Assembly: GCF_021869535.1 (NCBI RefSeq) | Contig: NW_026262593.1 | Location: forward strand, 14,694,001 to 14,758,000 | Source: Mytilus californianus | Taxonomy: Eukaryota | Direction: 5' to 3' | DNA length: 64,000 bases | Shown here: positions 2,666-20,877 of the stretch, piece by piece | How positions within the stretch are numbered: the stretch's first letter is position 1 | How the letters are laid out: each line of letters opens with the position of its first letter | Notes under the pieces: model-generated | Told to the model about the DNA's origin: nothing | The model's database searches: none | The model's input: the letters and a program-made list of their open reading frames with translations, nothing else | Translations under genes and position numbers: made by a program

Positions 2666-4231
2666 TTTAGTATCAATTAATTTAATTAGAGTTGATGGGT
2701 TTTAGTCATCGATAGAATGCAAGCGCTCTAAAGCTGTTGAAGTACACGTTTCATACAGCCATATAAAAATATACATTCAAGAGACCACTTCTTTAAAAAT
2801 TATCTTCCCTTTTGTTGCATTTTACCTATTAGAAATCAACGAGTCTGCTCCGTTTTGCAAGTCACCCTTTAATACTGACATTAAGCAATCTCTAATAAAT
2901 CACATATTTATACTTTTTGTCACTGGTCTCTAAAAGAGCGACGAAAGATATCAGAGGGACAGTAAAACTCTCTAGTTACCACTTAACACACAACTATATT
3001 CTCTTTTCCTCATCAAATGTTTCACGGCCCTATAAACTTTGCTAAAGTGTATTAATGCAGAGAAGTTGGCAGATATTTTGTTACATGTTATGATTTTCTC
3101 TTCTTTTGATGTTCATATAAAAAAGAAGATGTAGTATGAATGCCAATGAGACAACTCTCCACAAGAGACCAAATGACACAGAAATTAACAGATTTAGGTC
3201 ACCTTACGGCCTTCAACAATGAGCAAAGCCCATACCGCATAGTCAGCTATAAAAGGCCCCGAAATCACAAATGTAAAACAATTCAAACGAGAAAACTAAC
3301 GGCCTAATTAATGTACAAAAAAATCAAAGAAAAACAAATAAGTAACACAGCAACAGTTTGTTTTACATAGGACATGCACTGACTAAATATTTTGTAAATC
3401 ATCATTATTGATTGCTGTAACTTTTTATGGGCCTGATTTTGATTCTAATACTTGCAACTGGACATTTAAAAACTATCAAGAATCAATAATATAGTAGATT
3501 AACATGGGAACGTGCTCAGAACCTGCTTTTAGAAATATATACACACCATACCAGATAATATATTAAATAATAAAGTTTCAAGGATAAAACAAATCTGCTC
3601 ATCTACCAAATTACAAATCGTTTTTTGAAAGAGGAATTTACTTCTTCCCATAGCACCTGGCTTGATACTTACAAAATAAAGTCCGGATAAATTGCTGCCA
3701 GTCGGGAAGAACGGTCACTGTTGATGGAAATTTATTGAAAAAGCAATCCCAGTCAATTTCGTCACCTATGAAAATTAATAGTTACAACTAAATTGTATTC
3801 ATGTAAACGTTTCATTTCATATTGTACTAGATATTGGTATGTTGCTGGCTTTTACGAAGACAACTTTGGAATAGTATGACATGTGATGTATGCAAATTAA
3901 GAAGGAGATCCTCGTTGTACCTAGTATGACTGTATTTGTAGTTCCGAGTGTTTATTCTAATTTGTTATCTGTTAAAACCTGGATGTTATTATGTAAAATG
4001 AAATGGGAATGTTACCTTCATATTTATCTTATTGTATAAACACTCCAATTTTAGATTATAATTGTTAAACTTCAAATGCAATGTAGACCTGATCTTTATG
4101 GGAAAAAAACAAGATTGTAATTCCTGCAACAGAGAAGTTTTGAAATTGATAAAAAGAACGGGGAAATTGCGATGTCCACTTTTTTTGGAAACGTCGGTTT
4201 ATATTTCCGTCAAAACATGGATTTTTAATAA

Positions 4232-5271: not shown

Positions 5272-5707
5272 TCAATTTATATAATTGCTCCTTATAGGAC
5301 CCATAATAATGAGAGTGTGGTCTTTATAAACAGTGCACGTAATTGTTATATTCCCTATAGAATGAAAAGATAATTATTTCAGTCTTGATCATTTTTAACT
5401 TTGTGTCCAAAGATCTGTTAAATGAAACTTTCATTAAACACAATTATTTGGTAAATGCTGTTAATGAAAAATTCCATAAGCAGCGGTACAAACATCTTCG
5501 TTATTTGCCTCATATATTGGAATCTTCTAATGTCATTGGTTATCTATACTTGACGCAATCAATTAGCATATTTATTGGAAGTAATGCTTATTTTGACGGT
5601 CTCAATTAAAGTATGCAAGTTCGTTTGCTCGCCAAATATTTTTCAAACACTTACCAGATCTAAGACAGATTTTCCTTATATTTTCCAGTATAGAACTAAC
5701 ATCTTGC
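5272..5707 (-). CDS. TNFR-like last two exons (5707-5655 and 5354-5272)
   Basis: Strong signals: TTGCTTTTCTTCAG/GTAAGT and TCTTTTCATTCTATAG. Phases 2-1 then 1 to stop. Encodes QDVSSILENIRKICLRS-GNITITCTVYKDHTLIIMGPIRSNYIN*. Confidence 0.6.
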
Positions 5708-8700
5708 CTGAAGAAAAGCAATAATAGAAACTGTTGCATCTAAACAATTGTAATGATAACATTCGACGTCATATTTCTTTTTCACTCATTTCCATATCAA
5801 ATCACTAACAAATGCACATTTTCTATGTCATTCGATCAGTCTTAAAAACAACGCATTGACGAAGGTGTGTATCACTGACGATGATTAAAACAACTTAAAA
5901 TTTTCAAAGAAGCATTTTCTTACGAGAAACATTTTCCTGACATAATTTGTGCACATATTTATTTCTATTGATTGTTGATTCCTTCCCTTTCAGTGGCTAA
6001 TATTTTATACATATTCAGGATGATATTTACGGAAGCGTATTAGCGCCACACAATTTTTTTATATTTATTCCTATAACGCAAACATTTGCGAAATAACGCA
6101 AACCTTTTTTTGTTATAACGCAAACCTTTGCGAAATAACGCTAGCCTTTAGGTTATAAGGCAAACATTTGTTTTATTTTATTAGGGAAGCAGCTGTTATA
6201 AATGAAGGAGGATGCATGTATTAAAATTATTATTGCAACGTAAAATGCTTGAGTGTTTAGCACATATCATGGTATAATAATGAGCAGGAAAATACTTGTA
6301 TACATATATTACAAAGAAAATTAAGTAATTGGAAGTAATACCGAAGAAAAAAAATCAACCCTGTTAATGTAGCCGAATTTAAATATATTTCCAAAGTAAG
6401 TGCTCGTTTGAGCATTGTGTAAGATTGGTTCGATCCAAACAAGCTAACCTATTGAAATAAAGATATAAGATGCAGATTTTGTATTATTATAATTATGTTC
6501 TTAACATTCAAATTGCTACCCAAACATCTTAAATAGCTACATCACTAGATTGAAGTTTAAAACCCCATTACTTTTTATCATAGAATCTTTATCATATTAT
6601 GAGATTTCAACAAACGATTTCTTACATCAAAATTTAAAAAAAAAAAATTATTCTAAATAGTTCATTTTAAAGCAGAAAGATAATTTTGTCTATTAGACTT
6701 ATAGTTTCACAACTGTATGACATCTTTTTGCTCTTCTTTTTTTTCCGTAATCAAAATTTTCAAAATCTTGACCTTTCAATTAAAATTTGCCTATACCATA
6801 TCTATTTTCATGTTAAATTGATATTATTATCTGATACAAAAACCAATCTTAATTTGTGTATAATTGCATTTTAATTATTCCCTTATTCCTATGTATATTT
6901 ATTATAATCATTTGACCTTGTGTTCGTGGTACTTCTCTTAACTAAATCACAACCGAAATTTACAGACAAACAGACATGCAAATGCCGACATTTACAAAAA
7001 CACTGCTTTCAAATTATATCATAAATGTAAAATGTTTATCCAATATAGTTTTTGATTATAAAATATACAAAACTTAATGAATAATTAAAATCAAAATGTT
7101 TGCGTTACAACACAAACATAGGAAGAAATTTAAAAATACTGTATGGCACTAAAATTCTTCCGTATAAAATATTAAGAATTTGACGAATAATTAAAATCCA
7201 AATGTTTGCGTTTAACGCAAACATAGGAAGAAATATAAAAAAAATGTGTGGCGCTAATACGCTTCCGTAGATATTCGTTATCAAATATTTACCTATTGAC
7301 AACTAAAATATCATTGCTAGGATTACTTTCGATTAAATTAGAAACATAACATTATATAATTATTATATCAACATTAACCGTTTTATAGGTTTATATGCCA
7401 TTTAATTATTATTTCTTACAATCTTGTAGAATTTTAGACTATTTAACAACAAACTTACTCTTAGTGGGAAAAATTTAGTTCCCTTTTTAAAGTCCATTAT
7501 TTACCCTTCAACATCAGTTTGATGTGTAATGCTCATTGTTGAGGTTCAAACTCATGGTCATATTGATTCAAAGACAAATGTCTTCTTCAACTCATTGTCA
7601 TATCACTTCTGGTTACTTTTTGGAATTACAGGAACAAACAAAGTTGCGACTACTACCTGCGACAAGACCAGAAATTTTGTTGTTCTATATAATTCATTCA
7701 TTTAAATAGAACAACGCATTGACGAATTTGTGTATCACTGACTATGATTCAAAATATTCAAAAATTGTCAATGAAGCATTTTCTTAAGTGAAAATTTACC
7801 GGACATAATTTTATGCAAATGATAATTGATATTGATTGTTGTTTAGTTCAAGTGCACTGGCATATATTTCATTCATATTCAGGATCATGCTAATTAATGA
7901 AAAGTTAAATACCTATTGACCAACGGCATAACGTTATTAGGATTTATATTGACCAACGGCATATCATTATTAGGATTCCTATCAACAAATTAGGACTTTA
8001 ACATTATATAACAAATTTTATAAACAATAAACGTATAATATGACATAGAATTATTTTTTTCTTTTTCATTTCATTACATTGTAGACTATTCAACAACAAA
8101 CTTACTCATAGGAAAACCAATCAAAAGTCAAGTTGAATTTGCTAACAACCATCTGTATCAGTTTGATATATAATGCTCATTTTAAAGGTTCAAGCTCATG
8201 GTCATATTAATTCGAAAACAACATAATGTGCTCGAAACATGTAGGACTTTTAAGTTTGTTTGTTATCATATAATTCATTTACTTGCAAAAACAATCCATT
8301 AACGAATATGTCTACCCCTAATGCGGATTGAAACCTTTCAAAGAAACCCTTTCTTAAGTGAAAATATTTTTCCAAATATTCGGCTTTGAGCGTTCCTGGT
8401 GAATGTAAATCCAGAAAAGCGCTTCGGACGCATGAAATTTCTAAAGTGTTGTTTTCATTTTTTACAGCACTGGGTCGATACCGCTGCTGGCTGGTGGACT
8501 ATCAGTACCCGGGATTATCATTAGCGCAGTAGTCAGTACTCCGGTATGGACATGATTTATAACAATAATAATAAGAATATGTGGTATGATTGCCAATGAG
8601 ACAACTCTCCACAGGAGACAAAATGACATAGCAATTAATAACTATGAGTCACCTTACGGCCTTCAACAATGAGCAAAACTCATATCGCATAGTCAGCTAT

Positions 8701-11700
8701 AAAAAGCCCCGAAATGACAAATGTAAAACAATTCAAAAGAGAAAACTAACGGCTTGATTAATGTACAAAATAGAGAACGAAAAAGAAATATGATATATAG
8801 AAACAAACGACAACCACTGAATTACAGGCTCCTGACTTGGGACAGGCATATACAGAATGTGGCGGGGTTAAACTAGTTTAAAGACGCCAACCCTCCCCTA
8901 ACCTGGGACAGTGGTGTAACAGTACAATATAAGAACAAACTATAAAAATCAGTCGAAAATGGCTTAACTCATCAGATCGATACAAAGCAGAAATACATCC
9001 AACGAAAACACATCCCCACAAAAAAGTACAGATATGAAAGTACTCGCAGTTACTGACGGCTAGTTCAAAGCCAATAACAACTAATTACAAAAAGCATGCA
9101 TCTCAGACTAAAATATCAATCAGTACACATCCAACACCCAATGTATTTAGTGTAAAGACGTCATTAACAGTCAGAGAAAAATATGACCTTGTGCAATGCC
9201 AAAATACAGCGATGAATGTGCATATGTATATAAAAATAATATTTAGTTTGATTTTGATTTACTGATAACAAAATCAATATTAATACCAATAAAAACAATA
9301 TTCAAAGATCTAATTACAGTGTTGAATTGGTAACCTTTTAGAATAAGTTTATTTAAAGGATCGATAAGTTAACCCGGATTGTTTATGAATTTCCGGGCTC
9401 GGTAAACAACATCACTGTAAAAATCAGGATGTGCTATCCCGTTTGAAATAAGTTTTCTGTCTGCAGATACATCTAAACTTCCAAACCAAATCTTTTGTAT
9501 CTTTGGAAGAATTTAGTAAATGTTTTAAGTAATTTGTGGTAACGAATTCCCTGACTTAATAATTTACAACCTAGTTTCTAAAATTGTCCGTTTATATATC
9601 TATAAATTATTAAGAAACTAAGGTTTCAACTCCCTCATGCAAAGTTGGCCTTAGATTGATTTGGCTATTATTTTCAAGTCCTTTTGGTCAAAGTACTCTT
9701 CAACTGTTATGTATCTTTCTTAAACATCTTTGACTTTCAAATATTCGGCTTCGAGCGTTCCTGATGAAGGTAAATCCAGAAAAAGCGCTTCGGACGCATG
9801 AAATTATTAAGTGTTGTTTTCACTGTTTGTCTTGCAAATAGGTTTCATATTTATCCCATGGCGTTGTCAGTTTCTCTCGACTAATGAGTTTTGAATGTAC
9901 CCTTAGCATCCACCGCTCCTATATTCATATTGATAGTTTTTTGCTTCACGTCCATTGGCAAATATTTGATACAAATTCAGGATGATAATAAATGAAAAGG
10001 AACTTACCTATTGACCAAGGAAATATTGTTCCTAGAATCACTATTGAACAAATAAGAAACATACAATAATATAACTAATTTTATTAATAATAATCGTATT
10101 ATATGTTATTAATTGTTTTCTTTTTCTTTTAAATCTTATAACATTTTAGACAATTTAACAACAAAGTTACTCCTCCCATGCAAAATAAAATAACCAAACT
10201 TGCATTTTATAAGCCATTTGCATCCCTTCTACATGAGATTGATATCTAATGCTTATTTGTAAGGTTTAAACTCTTGATCATTTTGATTCGAAGACAAAAT
10301 GATGCCTGGGATAAACGTAGGATTATATAGTCATTTGTTCATGTACGCATTGGCGAATGTGTGTATCACGATAACGAAAGAAGCTTGTTACGATGTGAAT
10401 AATTTTTCCTATATATTTTGTTGAAGCAAATAATTATTAATAATAATTGTTAATTGCTTCACGAACAGTGGCAAATATTTCAATCAAATTCAAGATGATA
10501 ATTAATGACAAGTTACTTACCTATTGATCAAGGAAATACCGTTGTTAGGATTACTATTAAATAAAAAAAAACTATTTACAACAAAGTCTCAAAGGGAAAA
10601 AATGAAAATAAAATTGCATGTTTTATGCCATTTTCATCTGTTTGATTCAAATATCCAATGCTGATATTTAAAGTTCCAAATCGTCAGAAAACAAATTACC
10701 CTAAATTCACTGGCATACACCAAACTATTCTGTATAACAGTAGTCTATTGAGTAACTGCTTGAAAATACTCATATGTGTATGACGTTCAAAAAAGTTTAT
10801 TTTTGAAGGTAAATATTTTAATTTTTTACAACATTTTTTTAATATTTACTTAAAAAGAAAAATCAGATTAAATTATGATATACATCATGAGTTGAGAAAA
10901 AACAACACTATAGCAAAAACAAAAGACGAACATTCCATCTCCTATCCACAAAACATTACATAGAGAATTAAAAAAAAAGCAATCCGAGACCCAGAATAAA
11001 ATAGGGTTGATTGTAAAAAGTGCCTGCTTGGCTTGTTGCACCAATCGTGTTGCTTATCTCGACCTAAAGAGCATGGCGTTAGAGAATATAGGGGAAAATG
11101 TGTTTAATTCAAGGACAACCACAAAAATGTAATCTAGTATTCTAGAGATCAATATACTTGTTTTAATATTATACAGGTGCCTACAACCTCATATGTTAAA
11201 CCTTGGTCAACGGTATAACAAAAGGTAAACAAAATATCTATATACTAAACAATCTGTACCTGAAATGCATTGAACTCTAATATATATTTCAGTTTTAGAA
11301 TATATAGGACTTTTCGTACAATCATTTATTGTACTCTCAAAAGGCTGCATTCTGTATTTTCTTTATAACAAATTAATTTACGGTTACGTTTGCATTGTGA
11401 CTTGTATTTTTTTCATATTATTTCTACTAAATCCTTAAGAATGCAATAATGATTGATTTTATGACACCTTCAATTATTTCAGCTTTGAGTTAGAAAGTCA
11501 TGCTGTTCATTTTATGATTTGTATTGTTCATCATACTTTTATTTTCCCCCTTATCTCTTACAGTTTCCATTGAACATTTCCTAACGCAGACAATTCATTA
11601 CTTATGTACAATTGGTTCAATTATTGTGATCAATTATGTTATACTTATCAATCATATTTTATTCATACTGAATTTATATGAGAATCTCATTTTTCTATCC

Positions 11701-14700
11701 TATCTTTTCTATCCCAGTTCCATTGCGGTTACCGAAAAGAAATAGGGACAATAAGGCATATATTTGGCTTAAAATTGGTGCAAAATTTAAAAGTTACATC
11801 ATGATCTTAATTTAAGAATTAAACAAAAGATTTTAAAAAATAATGACGAAAGTAGTATTTTTGAAAACTTTTTTGGTTTTCCCCTTCCTTACTCATCTTT
11901 TGTAAGTACATTTTGGTTTGAAAAGTATTGGCACATATAAGAAACAACTTCATATTTCATGACATCATGTAACAAGCTTTGACAGCTGCTCTAAAAAAAT
12001 ATCTAAGTTCTTTACACGTCGTTTTCACAAAAGGAAATATCGATGAAATACCAAATTATCAGCCTGTATCGTCAATTCCGTGAAGTAGATGCCGATTAAA
12101 AAAGTAGTATTGCGTTATATAAGTAAACATTTTCATTTTCTTATGTTATGTATTTTTCTTTATTATGTGCAAATGTGAAATAGTAAACAAAATGTTCAAA
12201 ATTTTCATTTTTTCAATTGCCAAAAACATGTCCTCCTACTCTTTTTATCAAAATCACCGAACACAGACTGGTTGGGAATAAGAATAAACGTATCATAAAA
12301 ACAATTTAGTATTCTATTTGTTTTGATTTAAAGTAACATAAAATAAACACACCCTAATTGATGATTTTTTTCTGTTCCTTGTCTTCTCCTCTTAATGAAA
12401 CATATGGTACACAAAGCAACTATGAATCCCACACCACTACCCATTCCAGCTTTTAAATAAGTACTCGGGCCGCTTTCAACAACTACGTGCATCACTTCTG
12501 AAAGACAAAATACAATGAACAATCGTTATTTTTTATGAATCAAAATTGAAAATGTTAAATCATTCTATATGAACAATCTCGCATGTCATATCTAATTTGT
12601 TGTTATATGGAGAATGTGATGTTGATGGAATTTTATATTTTACTGTGTGGTGTTTTCCGCTTCTTTGTTTAAGTAGAAGTTGTGCTTTTCCTTCACATAT
12701 TTATCTATTGTCTTTATTTTTGTCATTAACACATATTTTGAAATTCTCACTTTTGTTTTCGATAATAGATCTTTGTATTATGTGTTTGTGGGCTTTGTAT
12801 TTGTAGTTGGGTTGTTTCATCTTTATATCATGGCATTGTTTTTTGTTCTACTCTACCTTGACACCCGATAAAACCTGATGCTTTCTTAGGACTAGGAAAT
12901 ATTTGGTGTGGTCTTGTGGCATATCTTAGTCTTAGCCAGTTTAACGAAAGTCTCATAAGATAAGATTCTGTCCACAATTTAGGATAGCTAGAATGTTTTA
13001 GGCAATTTCTAAGACACAGATCAAAAGTCAAAATGAAAAAACAAATTAAACGGAATAAAATTCCTTTATATGTTTTTATTCCGACATTTTTTATCTTGAA
13101 TTAATTCCTTTTTTTACTCGTGCTGATGCAATGAGAACCGTTATACAGGTAATGCAAACGAGTGAACCCAAGGTCAAATCTGTTATACGTATTAATAACA
13201 CAACGATTATAACCTCTTATTAAATATCCTACATTTTAATTTTTAATTTTAGATAGATTTTGTTATATATTATCATTAACAGTCATTTCAATATCTTTTA
13301 TCGTATTGTTATTCTTGTAACATTTTATGTTATGTTGAAATAAAGAAAATACGATACTCCTTTTACATGTATACTATGAAATATCATAAATTTATTTCAT
13401 ATACGTCTCTATTTTTATATTCATCCATTAGATAAAATAGATTTAGGATCTTAGATACGACCATCATAAAGATGGTCTTGTTTTGCATCCTAAGAAATGT
13501 ATCAGCAAAGTTCTAAAACCATCCTACATTAAGACGTAACTCGGGACATATCTTTGATTTCATTGACATGGCCCCTGACATATTTTGTCATTTATTTCCG
13601 TTCCAGGTTTGGTGGAAATTAAATTTCTAATGTTTGGCAGTGTGTTTTCAAATTAGAGTTATAGTTCAAGCTCGGACACTGGGGCTACTCTTCATTGCAC
13701 GAAAACGTCCGATACCATGCTTGAAGATATATGAATCTTTTTGTCCCCTTTTTTTGTCGTTGTCGCAAAAGAAGATTGAACCTTGTCTTAGTCAAGATTT
13801 AAAAAAAACTATTTGGATGTCAGATATAATAAACGACATTTAAAGAACTGTAAATAATTTGATCACGAGGGCTACAGCGAAACTTGACATTTCACAAACG
13901 TACATCAAACTACAAACCTTTGTCTGGTATACATGCCATATTATGCGTGGTGTTACAAGGATACCACATTTCAGTATTGTTCGGGCATGATGTCATGCAT
14001 TGGTGACATGGCTCCAACGACTGAGCAGGATTGTAGGAGCTACCGTTGGTGCATGGTTTACACTGTGTATCTGTAAAATTTGATGCTGAAAATAGAAAAT
14101 ATGTTTTACTTACGAAGGAAATACTCAACATTATGTAAACATTTTTCTGTTCCACGATTGTTTTTTAAAGAAGAGGAAAATTTTGTTTTAGATGTTATTG
14201 TTCATATACATTACATCAGTTCAATAATATAGAAAGTTACAATGACGCAAGTCTAAATATCTAAAGATCAAAATCTCATGGCGAAATTCATATGTCATAT
14301 TGATTGAGTTGCTCTTTACTTGCATAGAGTCCAGTCTCAAATATTTAATGCATATTTAAGACAAGAACAAACGAACAATTATTGACATTGCACATTGTTA
14401 ATGACGTCTTTACACTAGATCCATTGGATGTTGGATGTGTACTGATTGATATTTTAGTCTTAGATGCATGATTTTTTTTATTAGTTGTTAATGGCTTTGA
14501 ACTAGCTGTCAGTAACTGCGAGTACTCACAGATCTGTACTTAGTGTCTTTTTTGTTGTGGGGATGTATAAGTACCCGGCCACTTCAACTCTGTGTTTTTG
14601 TTCGATGTATTTCTATCTATATCCATCTGATGAGTTTAACCTTTTTCAACTGATTTTTATATTTTGTTCTTATGCTGTACTGTTACACCACTGTCGCTTT

Positions 14701-15877: not shown

Positions 15878-18800
15878 TGTTACTTAACAAAATAATGTTT
15901 TTTGTGTTATTGGGATGTAAAAGCCCTTCATACTAAAAATGTGTACAACCGGTCATAAAATTACAAAATAAAACGGAAAACAGTTAAAGCAGAAATTACA
16001 AGCTAAATCAAGTTTGGTATGGTCACATTGTCATGGAGAGACTGCGATCATGACTGCTGCGTTAATTAAAATAAACTGAATACTTCAATTTAGAATATCA
16101 CGTGATTTATGTCTGCCAATGTAAATCATATATTGGAATCACCATACAACATCTACACGTATGTCATGTTATTATAACTCTTAACTATTGTGTGCATATG
16201 TAAATATGTCGGCAATATATGCAGCAAATTAAAAACAAACTTTGGTAAAATAAAAGAAAAGAAATGTTTTTCATACATTTACACCATATTAAAAAAGATA
16301 TTATCATAAGTGAAAAACAATCTTACCATTTGCTACTAACCCATGTCCAGCAGAACAAAGAGAGTTTGCCTGACAAAAGCCTCTTGCTGGTTCTCTTTGG
16401 TCTTTAGTAAAATGATACCCTTGAATACATCCGCAAACAGTGTTAGATGTTGCTGTGCATGGAGACAGGATAGCTGATACCCAATGATTCATGACAACCT
16501 CTTCACACCTTGTGCAACTAGTACAGTAGTTGGCTCTGTTTGAGGTAACCTGATAGGCGCCATCCGGGCATGGAACGCACTGCATTTGGGTATTTGAATT
16601 CTGTAAGTTAACAACAACAGATAAGCTAACAAAACAGATAGTGTACACAATCTTTAAATGAGTTAAAACCAAAATAGAAACAGGTGCTAATGTCAACTTT
16701 TAAACACCTTCCATTTTCAGACCGAAAGAGAAGTAATTAATATAATAAAAGCCAGTTAACCTAGTATTTAATTTACTCATAAAATTTAATACAGCTGACA
16801 ATTGTTGGATTTAGTGAATTTCAATATAAAGATGTATGAAAATGCTTCAAAGATGTTTCAATAAATTTGAATAAGAAAAAACATGACAATGTCATTCATC
16901 CAAAAACATTGACGTTGATGACAATTTTGGTGTAGTATACTAATTTTTTGTAAGTTTTTATTTTTCGTTATTAGATTCTGCATTAATTAAGTATGTACTC
17001 TTCTGAAGAGGAAAATTTCCTGAATTAAACTTTAAAAATGGTTATGACATTTCTATAGACAGATATTTCCTTGTGTGTTTTCAACAACAAAAAACTGTAG
17101 GTAGGTGTTCAATTAAGGAAGCTACGGTCATCTGAAATTTGACCATTTACAGAATATGGAAAAGGTGACAAATCCCAAAAATACCAGCAAAATATGCATT
17201 TTTCTCAAGTAATCAGGTCTACAACTCATTTCCTGTGCTTTATCTCTTTAAATAAACATATCATAGATACCAGGATTGAAAATATGTGCGCCAGACGCGC
17301 GTTTGGCCGAATAAAAAAAAATTAAAAAGGCCAAATAAAGTACGAAGTTGAAGAGCATTGAGGACCCAACATTCCTAAAACTTTTACCAAATACAGCTTC
17401 GGTAATCTATTCCTGAGGTAGAAAAGCCTTAGTATTTCGAAAATTCAAAGTTTTGTTAACAGTTAATATATAATTATGACCATATCAATGATAAGTCATG
17501 TCAACACAGAAGTGCTGACTACTGGGCTGGTGATACCCTCGAAGAGAAAAACTCCACCAGCAGTGGCATCGACCTAGTGGTTGTAAACAAACTCATCATA
17601 GATACCAGGATTGGAATTTTGTACGCCAGACGCGCGTTGCGTCTACAAAAGACTCATTGCCTCATGGACAAAACAAATATAAATAATACACCATATGAAT
17701 GCATATTAATTTTTTTTCTTCATCATATTGGATATGAAAAATTCACAAATTTATCACGAAAACTCCCAAACTCCAGATTTTACACTAAAAATATCACACT
17801 TTCCGAATTAAACTCTTTTGAAGACTTAATATATAGTTGGACCCACATAACATCAACATTTTAAGCCAAACAAAAAATGGAAAATTAATGTTTTGTCTGA
17901 AAAAGAATATATAGTTTGATATATGATAGAACTTGTAGGTTTGGTTTAGCCCTTTCCATCTACTTGTGTTTTAAATTTGCTGATTTGAGCCATTAACAAA
18001 TCGTAGGACGTCATATGTTCATGATCTCTACACTATTTTTCAATTTCGTTTCTTTATGATAAAAAGCGTAAAACTACCAAACGTCTGTATGGAATTAAAT
18101 GGTCGCAAACCCCTAGTCACCTTGCAAAATAACAATCCCTCTGTAAGGGAGATAATCAAAGGTTTCTACAATATCATTAGTGGCCATAACTCGGACATAA
18201 GAAGTTTTATAGATGTAATGTCTTCGACATTACATTGTATTACTTCATATGTGATCTGTATATAGGGTCAAGGCTTATGACTTTCCGCATTATTCCTTTC
18301 TATGTAAACATGTTGGAAATTGGCCGTAAACAGTAAAACGTTAGAGTAAATGGTGAAAAATATTTGCCTGCTTTTTTATTATGTTTTGATGAAAAAGCTG
18401 CCCTGGCACTCTTGGTTATTTGTTACTCAGTCTCTTTCTATTGAACAATGTTGAATAGTTGATAATACTTTCATAAAAATCAAAGCCAAAAACTTTAATT
18501 GCCCTGATTGGTTTTAAATTGCACCATGTTATAGGCCATGCTCTACTGAAAAAAAAATGTATGATTTCAAGGAAATTTTGTCAACAGAAGTCACTTTTGG
18601 AACTTGAAATGAACTTTGTTCCCATTGATATCAAATATCTTCCTTAATCCAACAGTACACGGTTTCAAGATATGTTTTAATGAACAATGGTTTTATTGAC
18701 AAAAATTACCTTCATCTAGCTTTGCTTTTTATCTTCTTGTCTTGGAGTCCAATGATAAAGACACTAGGTTCTTACGACTAAACGTTTACGAATTTTCCCC

Positions 18801-19637
18801 ACTTATACATTTCCGGACCTACGATAGGGACTATTGTCGTTTGAGAAATCCCCCACCCCTCCTTTCAAAACTATGTCAGGCCCCCAAAAAAATTAAAAGG
18901 ACGCTGACTAACTTCTAGACTATAGATATTTTGTTTAATTTTTGCTTGCCACTTTCAGCAGTTTGCCCCTCTCCCTTCCCGCCATTTCAGTGTACTCCTA
19001 CTCCACTGAAAAAATTAAATAAACATATATCAAAGGCATGAGATACTTGAGGCAAGTGCAAATTAGTAAATTGCTGCTTTGCTAACTTGGTTAAAAGTCA
19101 AGTCTTCAGAACCCTTACACGATCGGCCTAAATTACGTAATTTTAATCATCGAAAAATCATTTCAGCTTTCAATTAAAGTTGTGTATACATGATATATAA
19201 TAAAATCTAGAAGTTGAGAAAAAATGACAAGAAAAATTAGACTTGTTTTCTCCAAATATTTTGCCCAAAGAAACTATGGTCACGACTCAACACATTATTA
19301 TAAATTTAAATACCTTGCAATGCAATATCATTATGATCTAGATTAAAACATATCATTTTAACAAAAGAATTTTGGGTCATGTTCAAAAATCATATCATTT
19401 ATATACATACTTCCTGATTTGAACTAATAAAGGTAGATATTATATATTATTAATATTTATCTAAAAGGAAATTGTACTCACCAAACAGTCGCCAACCGAA
19501 TGGAAACCAGGTCCACAGTAAAAACACACTTTCCCGTTTTTCTCATACGAAGGCCATTTATTGTAATTACAGCAAATAGAGTCCAAGAAAGAAATTAACA
19601 CAAAACAATAAAACAAATTCTGTCGGCGATAAATCAT
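5272..19637 (-). CDS. TNF receptor superfamily member: signal peptide, 4 cysteine-rich domains, TM, repeat-containing tail, no death domain (predicted 11 exons, 378 aa)
   Basis: Exons (minus): 19637-19482, 16600-16327, 14085-13918, 12497-12353, 11985-11893, 10553-10521, 10040-10008, 7978-7913, 7325-7293, 5707-5655, 5354-5272. All have AG/GT boundaries, phases are compatible and the total is 1137 nt. CRD patterns: CFYCGPG..DC, CVPCPDG.Y..CTSCTRC..PCTATSNTVC, CQANSLCSAGHG..DTQC, CKPC..PCHQCMTSC..PCNTTHNMAC. Confidence is high for exons 1-4 and moderate for the 3' exons. Confidence 0.8.
6028..7269. mobile_element. MITE-like element with TIRs and a 6-bp TSD
   Basis: TIR TACGGAAGCGTATTAGCGCCACACA at 6028 with its reverse complement ending at 7269. 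Both flanks are GATATT. Subterminal ATAACGCAAAC repeats are present. Confidence 0.8.
7293..10553 (-). CDS. Four homologous symmetric (phase 2-2) microexons of 33, 33, 66 and 33 nt
   Basis: 10553-10521, 10040-10008, 7978-7913 and 7325-7293. Each ends in (G/A)TCAATAG followed by GTAAGT, GTAAGT, GTATTT or GTAAAT. Each is open in the same frame and sits in a homologous intron unit. Confidence 0.65.
8375..9825 (+). mobile_element. Retrozyme-like unit (hammerhead-bearing direct repeats at 8375-8460 and 9739-9825) with a nested ~1-kb insertion
   Basis: Repeat GCGTTC-CTG(A/G)TGA-...-GAAAAGCGCTTC-GGACGC. The body segments match the reverse complement of 17330-17585. Confidence 0.65.
11893..11985 (-). 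CDS. TNFR-like exon 5 (juxtamembrane tail)
   Basis: Tandem acceptors TTTTTAG/AGCAG and a GATGA|GTAAGG donor. Only one frame is open: CQSLLHDVMKYEVVSYMCQYFSNQNVLTKD. Confidence 0.65.
12353..12497 (-). CDS. TNFR-like exon 4 (transmembrane helix + basic stop-transfer)
   Basis: TCTTTCAG acceptor. Encodes GMGSGVGFIVALCTICFI-KRRR. The donor AGG|GTGTGT is the most plausible of three nearby GTs. Confidence 0.8.
13918..14085 (-). CDS. TNFR-like exon 3 (CRD4)
   Basis: Lies within ORF 13910-14155. TTTTCTATTTTCAG acceptor and AAG|GTTTGT donor. Encodes ASNFTDTQCKPC...MACIPDK. Confidence 0.85.
15562..15878. repeat. Foldback (arms ~120 bp, inner 48 bp perfect, 29-nt loop) associated with (TA)n tracts; each arm carries a hammerhead-like motif
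   Basis: TAGCGCTTTCATGCCTTCTGGCAATCTTCAGGCGACGATTTAACAATG ends at 15685 and its exact reverse complement starts at 15715. (TA)n tracts lie at ~15503-15532 and ~15827-15874. Confidence 0.85.
16327..16600 (-). CDS. TNFR-like exon 2 (CRD1 end, CRD2, most of CRD3)
   Basis: Lies within ORF 16304-16696. TTACAG acceptor, GTAAGA donor, TNFR cysteine spacing. Confidence 0.9.
17250..17665 (-). mobile_element. Retrozyme-like monomer with two decayed hammerheads ~336 bp apart
   Basis: Direct repeats ATCATAGATACCAGGATT...CGCCAGACGCGCGTT at ~17260 and ~17596. They match the intact hammerhead copy at 40790-40868. The cores are mutated or deleted. Confidence 0.7.
19482..19637 (-). CDS. TNFR-like exon 1 (signal peptide + start of CRD1)
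   Basis: MIYRRQNLFYCFVLISFLDSICCNYNKWPSYEKNGKVCFYCGPGFHSVGDCL followed by a GTGAGT donor, phase 0. Not in the ORF track. Confidence 0.85.
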
Positions 19638-20877
19638 AATTTTGAAGTATTCTAACTTAAGATATTGGTTTCATTTCATATTAATTTCTTTTGCGAATTT
19701 AAATTGAAAAAAGAAACTGGAAATACCAATCATTTAAAATAAAATCAAAGACAAAACATGAATGACGTACGTAATATTATGATCACAGTAGGCATATTGT
19801 CCGGCTGGGATCGTGTTTTTTCGAGTGATTTGATCGGGTTTTTTTCGAGTGTGACCACGTTTTTTCGAGTAAATACGATCAAAACTGTCAACAACCAGAT
19901 GTCTTTTCTGGTAAAAATGTAAACTTGATGCTTATACTTAATATACAACACCATACAAGGTAAGGTAGTATTTTTTGTTTAAAAGATATTATCAACCCTA
20001 CATTATTTTGTGTTATAAAAGTTTAATTTAGTCTTACCACATTCCAAAATATGGAGTTAACCCGTTTTTATATACATACCAATTCAAGTGTCAGAGAGAA
20101 TGCATACATGGCATGTATTTATCCTTAAATATATAGACACGTTATAAAAACTCTTGTTATTGCATTCATAAGAACATTTTGAAAAAAAATCATTTGTATA
20201 TATCCGGGTTTTTTCGAGAGCAGTTCGATGTTTTCGTGTGCGGTTCAGGTATTATCGAGTGAAAAAAATCGTATGTCTTAAAATGTTATATGCCTGTGCA
20301 TTTACGATTATATGATTTGCATATCTACAAATACTTGAATTGGATTGGTCCGTTAGCATTTTTTTCCTTGGTTTACACTTCGAAAGACCATGTTGCCGAA
20401 ACTATTTTCGTAACCTTCATTGTGATCTATTTGTGCGCGATACAGATGCATGGGATCAAATACATAACTGTTATTTCTATTCTAATGAATAATAAAAAGA
20501 ATTAATGCATTTAAGCTTGGAAAATGTATAAATTTACAATAAAATAAAATTCCGCGAAATTTCTTGAATGAGCTTGGCGCATTAACGTCATGGAAAAGCT
20601 TGACGTCATACGAATGAAAACTCTCAAGATGAAGATTATTCCGTTTTTTGTACGCTTCAAATTTAAATAATATTTCATTAAAATGAAGTTTTTGAGGTAG
20701 GTGTTATTTCATTTTAGATTCTATTGCATTAATCGAACATTTAATAGATTTAAGAAAGTCAATATGGCGGCTTACTCCCTAGTTACGAAATGTCAATTGT
20801 GCATTTGATGGTAAATAGTAGCCAATGTACCAAAAATTGATAATTAAAAATTGCAAATGTTTGGGTCAAGAATTATA

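Follow-up and report, generated by a model that had tools for sequence, protein, structure and literature searches.

The sequence studied here is a 64,000-nucleotide (nt) stretch of the Mytilus californianus genome (GCA_021869535.1, JAKFGE010000011.1), hereafter the window, which is free of N runs. Its minus strand carries an array of four small exon cassettes (c1-c4) that belongs to the RefSeq gene LOC127719635, a member of the TNF-receptor family. Cassettes c1-c3 are coding exons already listed in public gene models. We conclude that c1-c4 are probably microexons of a death-domain TNF receptor, and that duplicated exon-plus-intron units build a juxtamembrane spacer linker of variable length in this protein. 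The labels given to LOC127719635 by NCBI ("TNFRSF5-like" and "uncharacterized") stem from automatic naming.

Microexon cassettes and gene assignment

All coordinates are those of the window, and the exons lie on the minus strand. Cassettes c1 (10521..10553, 33 nt, encoding NPNNGISLIN) and c2 (10008..10040, 33 nt, DSRNNISLVN) are present in both RefSeq isoforms, and the orthologue of c1, designated A, occurs in all five species compared. Cassette c3 (7913..7978, 66 nt) consists of two 33-nt repeats in one exon; it is included in isoform X1 and skipped in isoform X2. Cassette c4 (7293..7325, 33 nt, NPSNDILVVN) has intact AG/GT borders and an open frame, and a purine-rich stretch (aatcgaaag) precedes its acceptor. 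Each of the four lies between AG and GT in phase 2-2, has a length divisible by three, and is open in one frame out of three. The lengths (33/33/66/33 nt), borders, reading frame, and peptides given in the initial annotation, which was made from the letters of the window, were reproduced from the minus strand. Its claim that the cassettes are exons is borne out by the RefSeq models for c1, c2, and c3 and not for c4, which is absent from every gene model. Isoform X2 differs from X1 by exactly c3, corresponding to 22 residues fewer, and the repeat count in the public isoforms is therefore four (X1) or two (X2). This difference, together with the unit numbers of other species described below, agrees with the earlier proposal that the symmetric phase allows a variable repeat number.

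The gene was identified through a word search driven by an alignment in which the window exons were entered as separate rows beside paralogous proteins. The search led to XP_052081819.1 ("TNFRSF5-like isoform X2" of M. californianus, 385 residues), whose exons are identical to the window, and its cluster mate XP_052081818.1 is isoform X1 (407 residues). The locus of isoform X1 (L003) matches the window base for base, with a window position equal to 29638 minus the L003 position. Both proteins map codon for codon onto the transmembrane (TM) exon, c1, c2, c3 (X1 only), and a 53-nt exon. The TM exon (exon 4, 12353..12497) encodes the transmembrane helix and KRRRQGTEKNHQL-G, and is supported by the codon mapping, a helix in the AlphaFold2 model, and 82-91% identity to four orthologues. 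It contains a hydrophobic stretch followed by KRRRQ that AlphaFold2 models as a helix, and a single-pass type I topology may be supposed. Its donor (GG|GTGTGT at 12353) is in phase 2 and splices straight into c1. The 53-nt exon downstream of the cassettes (5655..5707, QDVSSILENIRKICLRS), which the initial annotation had also recognized, proved to be real by codon mapping. It forms a helix (4-14 of the model) right before the death domain and is kept in orthologues and paralogues.

The cassettes had originally been given their frame by a 98-nt "exon 5" at 11893..11990 (-), which is in neither RefSeq isoform. The donor of the TM exon is already in phase 2, matching the phase 2-2 cassettes, and joins c1 directly; insertion of the 98-nt exon would shift the frame. 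The orthologous sequence is 71-78% identical with frame-breaking indels, and "exon 5" has no Pfam match. A weak 30-nt candidate at 10700..10729 (-) was rejected as well. It is not in the gene models, its orthologues have lost the GT donor and gained an in-frame TAA, and it is intron sequence.

The assignment of the cassettes to a TNF-receptor gene, already made in the initial annotation, is upheld by the inclusion of c1-c3 in the RefSeq isoforms and by the ectodomain, in which exons 2 and 3 encode extracellular TNFR/NGFR cysteine-rich repeats (Pfam PF00020). Exon 2 (16328..16600) encodes cysteine-rich domains (CRDs) 2-3 and matches TNFR_c6 (PF00020) with 30.3 bits, above the curated cut-off of 29.4, and exon 3 (13919..14086) encodes CRD 4 (TNFR_c6, 21.6 bits, E 0.0003); both were also placed by codon mapping. 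Exon 1 (19482..19637) contains the start codon, a putative signal peptide, and the first cysteine-rich repeat, and was placed by exact codon mapping of XP_052081818.1 with its ends within 2 nt. A full-library search with the CRD2-3 open reading frame (ORF) gave best representatives of 45-55% identity, which are paralogues and revealed the tail structure of the family. A word search with the ORF of the TM exon found only a 67-residue ORF on a 3.1-kb Logan contig, ending 42 nt past the exon.

Probable C-terminal death domain

The initial annotation described the receptor as having no death domain. However, the window does not reach the last exon. A 96-nt exon (3673..3768), supported by tblastn to paralogues, codon mapping, and the fold, encodes the initial portion of the domain (GDEIDW...FIRTLF). 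Codon mapping placed the last exon, which encodes the remainder, at 31619-31816 of L003, approximately 2 kb past window position 1. Because this exon sits outside the window, neither tblastn with full paralogue proteins nor hmmsearch with a profile built on the final exons of these paralogues found a match to it in the window.

The C-terminal 116 residues were modeled with AlphaFold2 using an alignment of ten orthologous and paralogous C-terminal regions, which align well. The model is a six-helix bundle with a predicted local distance difference test score (pLDDT) of 87.5 and a predicted template modeling score (pTM) of 0.83. In an exhaustive structural comparison by VIA-align (48,161 chains), ranks 1-7, 9, and 13 were occupied by death domains, with Z scores of 8.0-5.9 and root-mean-square deviations (rmsd) of 2.8-3.5 over 77-90 residues. 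The top match was 2of5_A, a chain of an oligomeric death-domain complex (Z 8.0, rmsd 2.8, 79 residues aligned), and it was followed by FADD (Z 7.3 and 7.2, 25-28% identity), a chain of the TNFR1/TRADD/RIPK1 complex (Z 7.1), and RIPK1 (Z 6.9). The death domains of Ankyrin-G and p84, and then CARD and pyrin domains, appeared lower. A profile search of PDB sequences gave a weak match to the RIPK1 death domain (E 0.9), and a Foldseek search of the PDB with the C-terminal model gave nothing significant. Because death domains fill the top ranks with full-domain coverage, and because the bundle lies in the tail of a TNF receptor, the C-terminal domain of LOC127719635 very likely has a death fold.

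Duplicated units

The cassettes are parts of four homologous exon-plus-intron units on the minus strand, with spacings of 513, 2062, and 653 nt. The homology recognized in the initial annotation extends through the introns, in which the flanking blocks (D1, D4, D6, D7, D9, D12, and D15) are 71-92% identical between units. When the window was searched with a 30-nt pattern from the intron sequence directly following the cassettes, the four units were the only sites hit (0 expected by chance); this restriction also led us to reject the motif as a dispersed transposon. The cassettes themselves are 67-88% identical between units and hence no better conserved than the introns. The earlier statement that the introns have diverged heavily while the cassettes are kept does not apply to these paralogous units, and the argument for selection derived from it falls with it.

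Two further observations concern the introns of the units. A GTAAGT-like donor motif (GAGTAAGTTTGTTGTT) is located about 140-150 nt upstream of every cassette (7453-7458, 8100-8105, 10165-10170, and about 10694-10699, minus strand) and aligns with the donor of the weak 30-nt candidate. It could be what is left of a second ancestral exon, or it could serve as a splicing decoy. In addition, the intron motif that follows the cassettes has a 50-nt counterpart of approximately 77-79% identity at 8535-8586 of L002, the locus of the M. galloprovincialis paralogue LOC143057957. This stretch lies between two paralogous genes with no adjoining cassette, and may be left over from a lost unit or belong to a small dispersed repeat.

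Orthologues and paralogues

We compared M. californianus with four other Mytilus species, whose orthologues contain 3 to approximately 5.7 repeat units; the comparison called for in the initial annotation thus revealed a varying repeat number. We hereafter designate the orthologues of c1, c2, c3, and c4 as A, x, B, and C, respectively. M. galloprovincialis has a 33-nt A and a 66-nt B, and its x unit is a remnant from which the cassette itself is deleted. The genomic layout of M. edulis is the same, with intact cassettes at 7461-7493 and 9191-9256 of its locus (L007) and x as a cassette-less remnant. In M. trossulus, A is 34 nt long (15659-15692 of L005) owing to an extra A before the donor, and the 66-nt B is used in the RefSeq model. 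M. coruscus has A, one 123-nt exon of about 3.7 repeats that is the orthologue of B, and an intact C at 30392-30424 of L006 that its model does not use. No separate x unit was found in the M. coruscus locus, and no c4 copy was found in the loci of the edulis complex, in which B is 66 nt long, compared with 123 nt in M. coruscus.

The AG/GT borders and the frame of A and B are intact in all five species, the insertion in A of M. trossulus excepted. The cassettes are included in the RefSeq models of M. californianus and M. trossulus and in the consortium models of M. galloprovincialis and M. coruscus. Because the unit content differs among orthologues, the array appears to have gained and lost units since the Mytilus species split, through duplication of whole units and within exons.

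Two of the gene models have unusual features. The M. trossulus RefSeq model regains its frame through a 5-nt exon (GATTC) flanked by AG/GT at 16122-16126 of L005, which is either a genuine mini-exon that compensates for the insertion or a makeshift of the gene predictor. In M. edulis, the model CAG2188340.1 omits both intact cassettes and the first death-domain exon; it probably reflects incomplete annotation and not an actual isoform.

Paralogues carry a related arrangement. LOC143057957 of M. galloprovincialis has one 36-nt phase 2-2 microexon between the TM exon and the homologue of the 53-nt exon, and LOC127720182 of M. californianus (L008), located on the same chromosome, has one 24-nt phase 2-2 microexon at the corresponding site. 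A third paralogue has no juxtamembrane microexon. The single microexons encode residues unrelated to the 11-residue repeats. Because paralogues carry a single phase 2-2 microexon at this site, the juxtamembrane microexon appears to be an old feature of the subfamily, and its amplification, judging from these gene structures, is specific to LOC127719635.

Rates of change and predicted disorder of the linker

The cassettes change rapidly at the protein level. Between species, codon changes in A and B occur at 12-14 nonsynonymous to 1 synonymous, compared with approximately 1.2-1.4 to 1 in the other 292 codons (Fisher p 0.004-0.016, with species pairs that are not independent). The ratio of nonsynonymous to synonymous substitution rates (dN/dS) is about 1 or higher for the cassettes, 0.17-0.26 for the ectodomain in most pairs, and 0.18-0.61 for the C-terminal part. 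Between M. californianus and M. galloprovincialis, 42% of the cassette residues differ, and B diverges at the pace of its introns. A unit pattern, N-P-x-N-x-(I/M/V)-(S/P)-(L/M/T)-(I/V)-N, nevertheless recurs in all species despite many substitutions.

In isoform X1, the linker from the membrane to the 53-nt exon has 57 residues, including 16 Asn and 5 Pro. When the entire cytoplasmic portion was modeled with AlphaFold2, this linker showed no secondary structure (pLDDT 31-40), whereas the death domain in the same model exceeded 88. A pattern scan of the linker found no match to the RHIM core [IV]Q[IVL]G, TRAF2, TRAF6, NPxY, or [DE]xxxL[LI]. The matches were one DxxL[LIV]-like site (DxxLV) in c3 and one N-x-S sequon, which has no role on the cytoplasmic side.

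RNA evidence

Support for transcription of the cassettes rests on the public gene models. To our knowledge, NCBI gives alternative isoforms only where transcript alignments back them. Reads were also collected on 5996-11995 from an RNA run (X8, from the same study as the best DNA match) and three contig runs, and high depth was found only on repeat blocks. In the contig runs (X1-X3), the bin 10396-10595, which holds c1, has a depth of 28-200, and the neighboring unique bins are empty.

Proposed origin, role, and alternative explanations

An ancestral phase 2-2 microexon may have lain between the TM exon and the 53-nt exon. Unequal crossover between intron copies would have duplicated the exon-plus-intron unit of about 0.5 kb to give c1, c2, c3, and c4, and replication slippage would have duplicated repeats inside exons, as in c3 (2 x 33 nt) and the 123-nt exon of M. 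coruscus. As every copy is symmetric, any subset could be spliced in without disturbing the downstream death domain, and this harmless inclusion or skipping would be what keeps the frame under selection. The encoded segment, which is 22-44 residues long, rich in Asn and Pro, and predicted to be disordered, would tether the death domain to the membrane. Length would count for more than sequence in this tether and would determine how far the death domain reaches and how freely it can take part in oligomer or adaptor assembly. The repeats are best read as a juxtamembrane spacer of variable length and not as an amyloid module. The "adaptor-spacing module" of the initial annotation comes near to this reading.

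Several results weigh against a pure spacer in a death receptor. Cassette A is 91-94% identical in the orthologues, compared with 72-75% for the intron upstream of it (p ~0.02), and this better conservation hints at some sequence constraint that a pure spacer does not need. The alignments used for AlphaFold2 contain only ten sequences, so the low pLDDT of the linker is weak evidence of disorder. Pfam found no Death match in four C-terminal tails at E up to 10, and a Z score of about 8 can be reached by chance for helical bundles, according to the caution of the tool itself. On the side of expression, the RNA run X8 (approximately 6% sampled) has zero depth on c1-c4, "exon 5", and all unique positions of 5996-11995; as this run did not capture the gene, it speaks neither for nor against exon use. 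No transcript-derived fragment was recovered by a word search that used residues 225-345 of the protein in RefSeq. Gene models may also pass between species by protein homology, so that the five annotations do not count as wholly independent.

The conservation of A would also be compatible with binding of a partner by the N-P-x-N...L-V-N pattern. In a broader form of this idea, which we consider rather unlikely, the 11-residue units would be short linear motifs (for example, N-P-x-N or D-x-x-L-V-like) that dock an adaptor or sorting protein, with the copy number tuning the valency. The recurrence of the N-P-x-N pattern in all species despite substitutions, the better conservation of c1/A than of its intron, and the DxxL[LIV]-like match in c3 would be expected from such motifs, but the linker has none of the TRAF2, TRAF6, NPxY, and [DE]xxxL[LI] patterns. 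The divergence of 42% of the cassette residues between M. californianus and M. galloprovincialis, with dN/dS of about 1 or more, and the unrelated residues of the paralogues' single microexons are also difficult to reconcile with docking. A bolder and improbable proposal is that the repeats are a copy-number-variable module, either a multivalent docking site or a seed of higher-order assembly, that tunes the signaling threshold of the death receptor. The nonsynonymous excess would then reflect diversifying selection, for example by pathogen effectors, and not relaxed constraint.

Quite a different possibility is that the cassettes are annotation artefacts or decaying pseudo-exons, and that the real mRNA connects the TM and 53-nt exons directly, as CAG2188340.1 does. 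The absence of reads on the cassettes (in a run without coverage of the gene), the M. edulis model, the cassette dN/dS of about 1, the decayed c2 unit of the edulis complex, the unused c4, and the +1 insertion in A of M. trossulus would all fit. However, the junction of the TM exon with the 53-nt exon is also in frame, so the predictors did not need 33-nt exons, and two RefSeq and two consortium annotations include the cassettes nonetheless. With A and B retaining their AG/GT borders and frame in five species, except for the insertion in A of M. trossulus, and with paralogues retaining a microexon at the corresponding site, we regard this explanation as very unlikely. The amyloid module of the initial annotation, in which an Asn ladder or RHIM-like element polymerizes in place of a missing death domain, appears hardly credible. 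The Asn content (16 of the 57 linker residues) beside short hydrophobic runs (ISLIN and PLVN) and the regular 11-residue period recall such elements. Nevertheless, a death domain is present, the [IV]Q[IVL]G core is lacking, and most units contain one or two prolines. The linker is modeled without strands at a pLDDT of 31-40, its sequence is weakly constrained and changes freely between species, and isoform X2 loses half of the repeats.

Comparison with known systems

Among known systems, the mussel receptor is comparable to the death-domain TNF receptors of the TNFR1, Fas, DR3, and p75NTR type: it shares their cysteine-rich ectodomain and is predicted to share the single TM helix, the disordered juxtamembrane segment, and the six-helix death fold at the C terminus. 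Unlike in those receptors, the linker is built from tandem 33-nt exons whose copy number varies by isoform and species, and the death domain is too diverged for the Pfam Death model. Like RHIM and cryptic-RHIM motifs, the linker is short, lies on the cytoplasmic side of an immune receptor, and contains many Asn and beta-branched or hydrophobic residues, but it has no core tetrad, is proline-rich and predicted to be disordered, and is poorly conserved. In the PEVK region of titin, short in-frame tandem exons encode low-complexity unstructured repeats, the number of which is set by splicing. The mussel array has only three or four exons, lies in a receptor tail, and has no known mechanical role. 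Adjacent homologous exons of equal phase, local duplication, and alternative use are shared with tandem exon duplication as reviewed for human genes (PMC9741552). In contrast to the mutually exclusive swaps of the classical cases, the mussel copies are additive and lengthen a repeat, and duplication within the exon contributes. Schistosome micro-exon genes (PMC5825161) also have symmetric microexons of up to 36 nt, the skipping of which yields protein variants. Those genes are mostly microexonic with secreted products, whereas in the mussel gene microexons make up three or four of the 10-11 exons and encode only a cytoplasmic linker.

Exons c1-c3 are not new, since RefSeq already contains them together with the isoform that skips c3. 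No description of this linker array was found in the literature searched. Relative to the annotation and this literature, the tandem array with its species-specific unit number, the intact but unused fourth unit, the ancestral single microexon in paralogues, and the death-fold assignment appear to be new. In bivalves, the TNF-receptor and death-domain families are greatly expanded, and little work has been done on their signaling. Because its tail carries a diverged death domain according to the structural model, the LOC127719635 subfamily, which Pfam sees as TNFR_c6 only, can be regarded as a group of candidate death receptors. The locus also details how a receptor tail may grow, by copying of a microexon with its intron and within the exon, with a linker length that differs between isoforms and close species. 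As a new instance of a known process, it should be of moderate interest in the fields of bivalve immunity and exon evolution.

Inserted elements and neighboring features

A terminal inverted repeat (TIR) element of approximately 1.25 kb (6023..7274), with 52-nt arms at 6023-6074 and 7223-7274 that are 94% complementary, sits 19 nt downstream of the c4 donor; M. coruscus lacks it at the corresponding spot. The intron between c2 and c3 contains a multi-copy repeat block (about 8380..9900) with very high read and contig depth on both strands and many variants. RNA reads are abundant on 8396-9795, again from both strands and with many variants, and show junctions to unrelated sequence. This block is a highly multi-copy, transcribed element family.

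Two observations concern the gene models of the family. At 12047-12130 of L002, the RefSeq "isoforms" X1-X4 of LOC143057957 are in fact two tandem paralogous receptors, and X3 ends in exon 2 of the next gene in another frame, suggesting that X3 is a read-through chimera. On the minus strand at 19609-19653, 5' of the annotated ATG at 19637, another frame of LOC127719635 resembles the longer N-terminus of the paralogue P0003. This resemblance suggests that LOC127719635 may have undergone a frameshift and a shift of the start codon relative to P0003.

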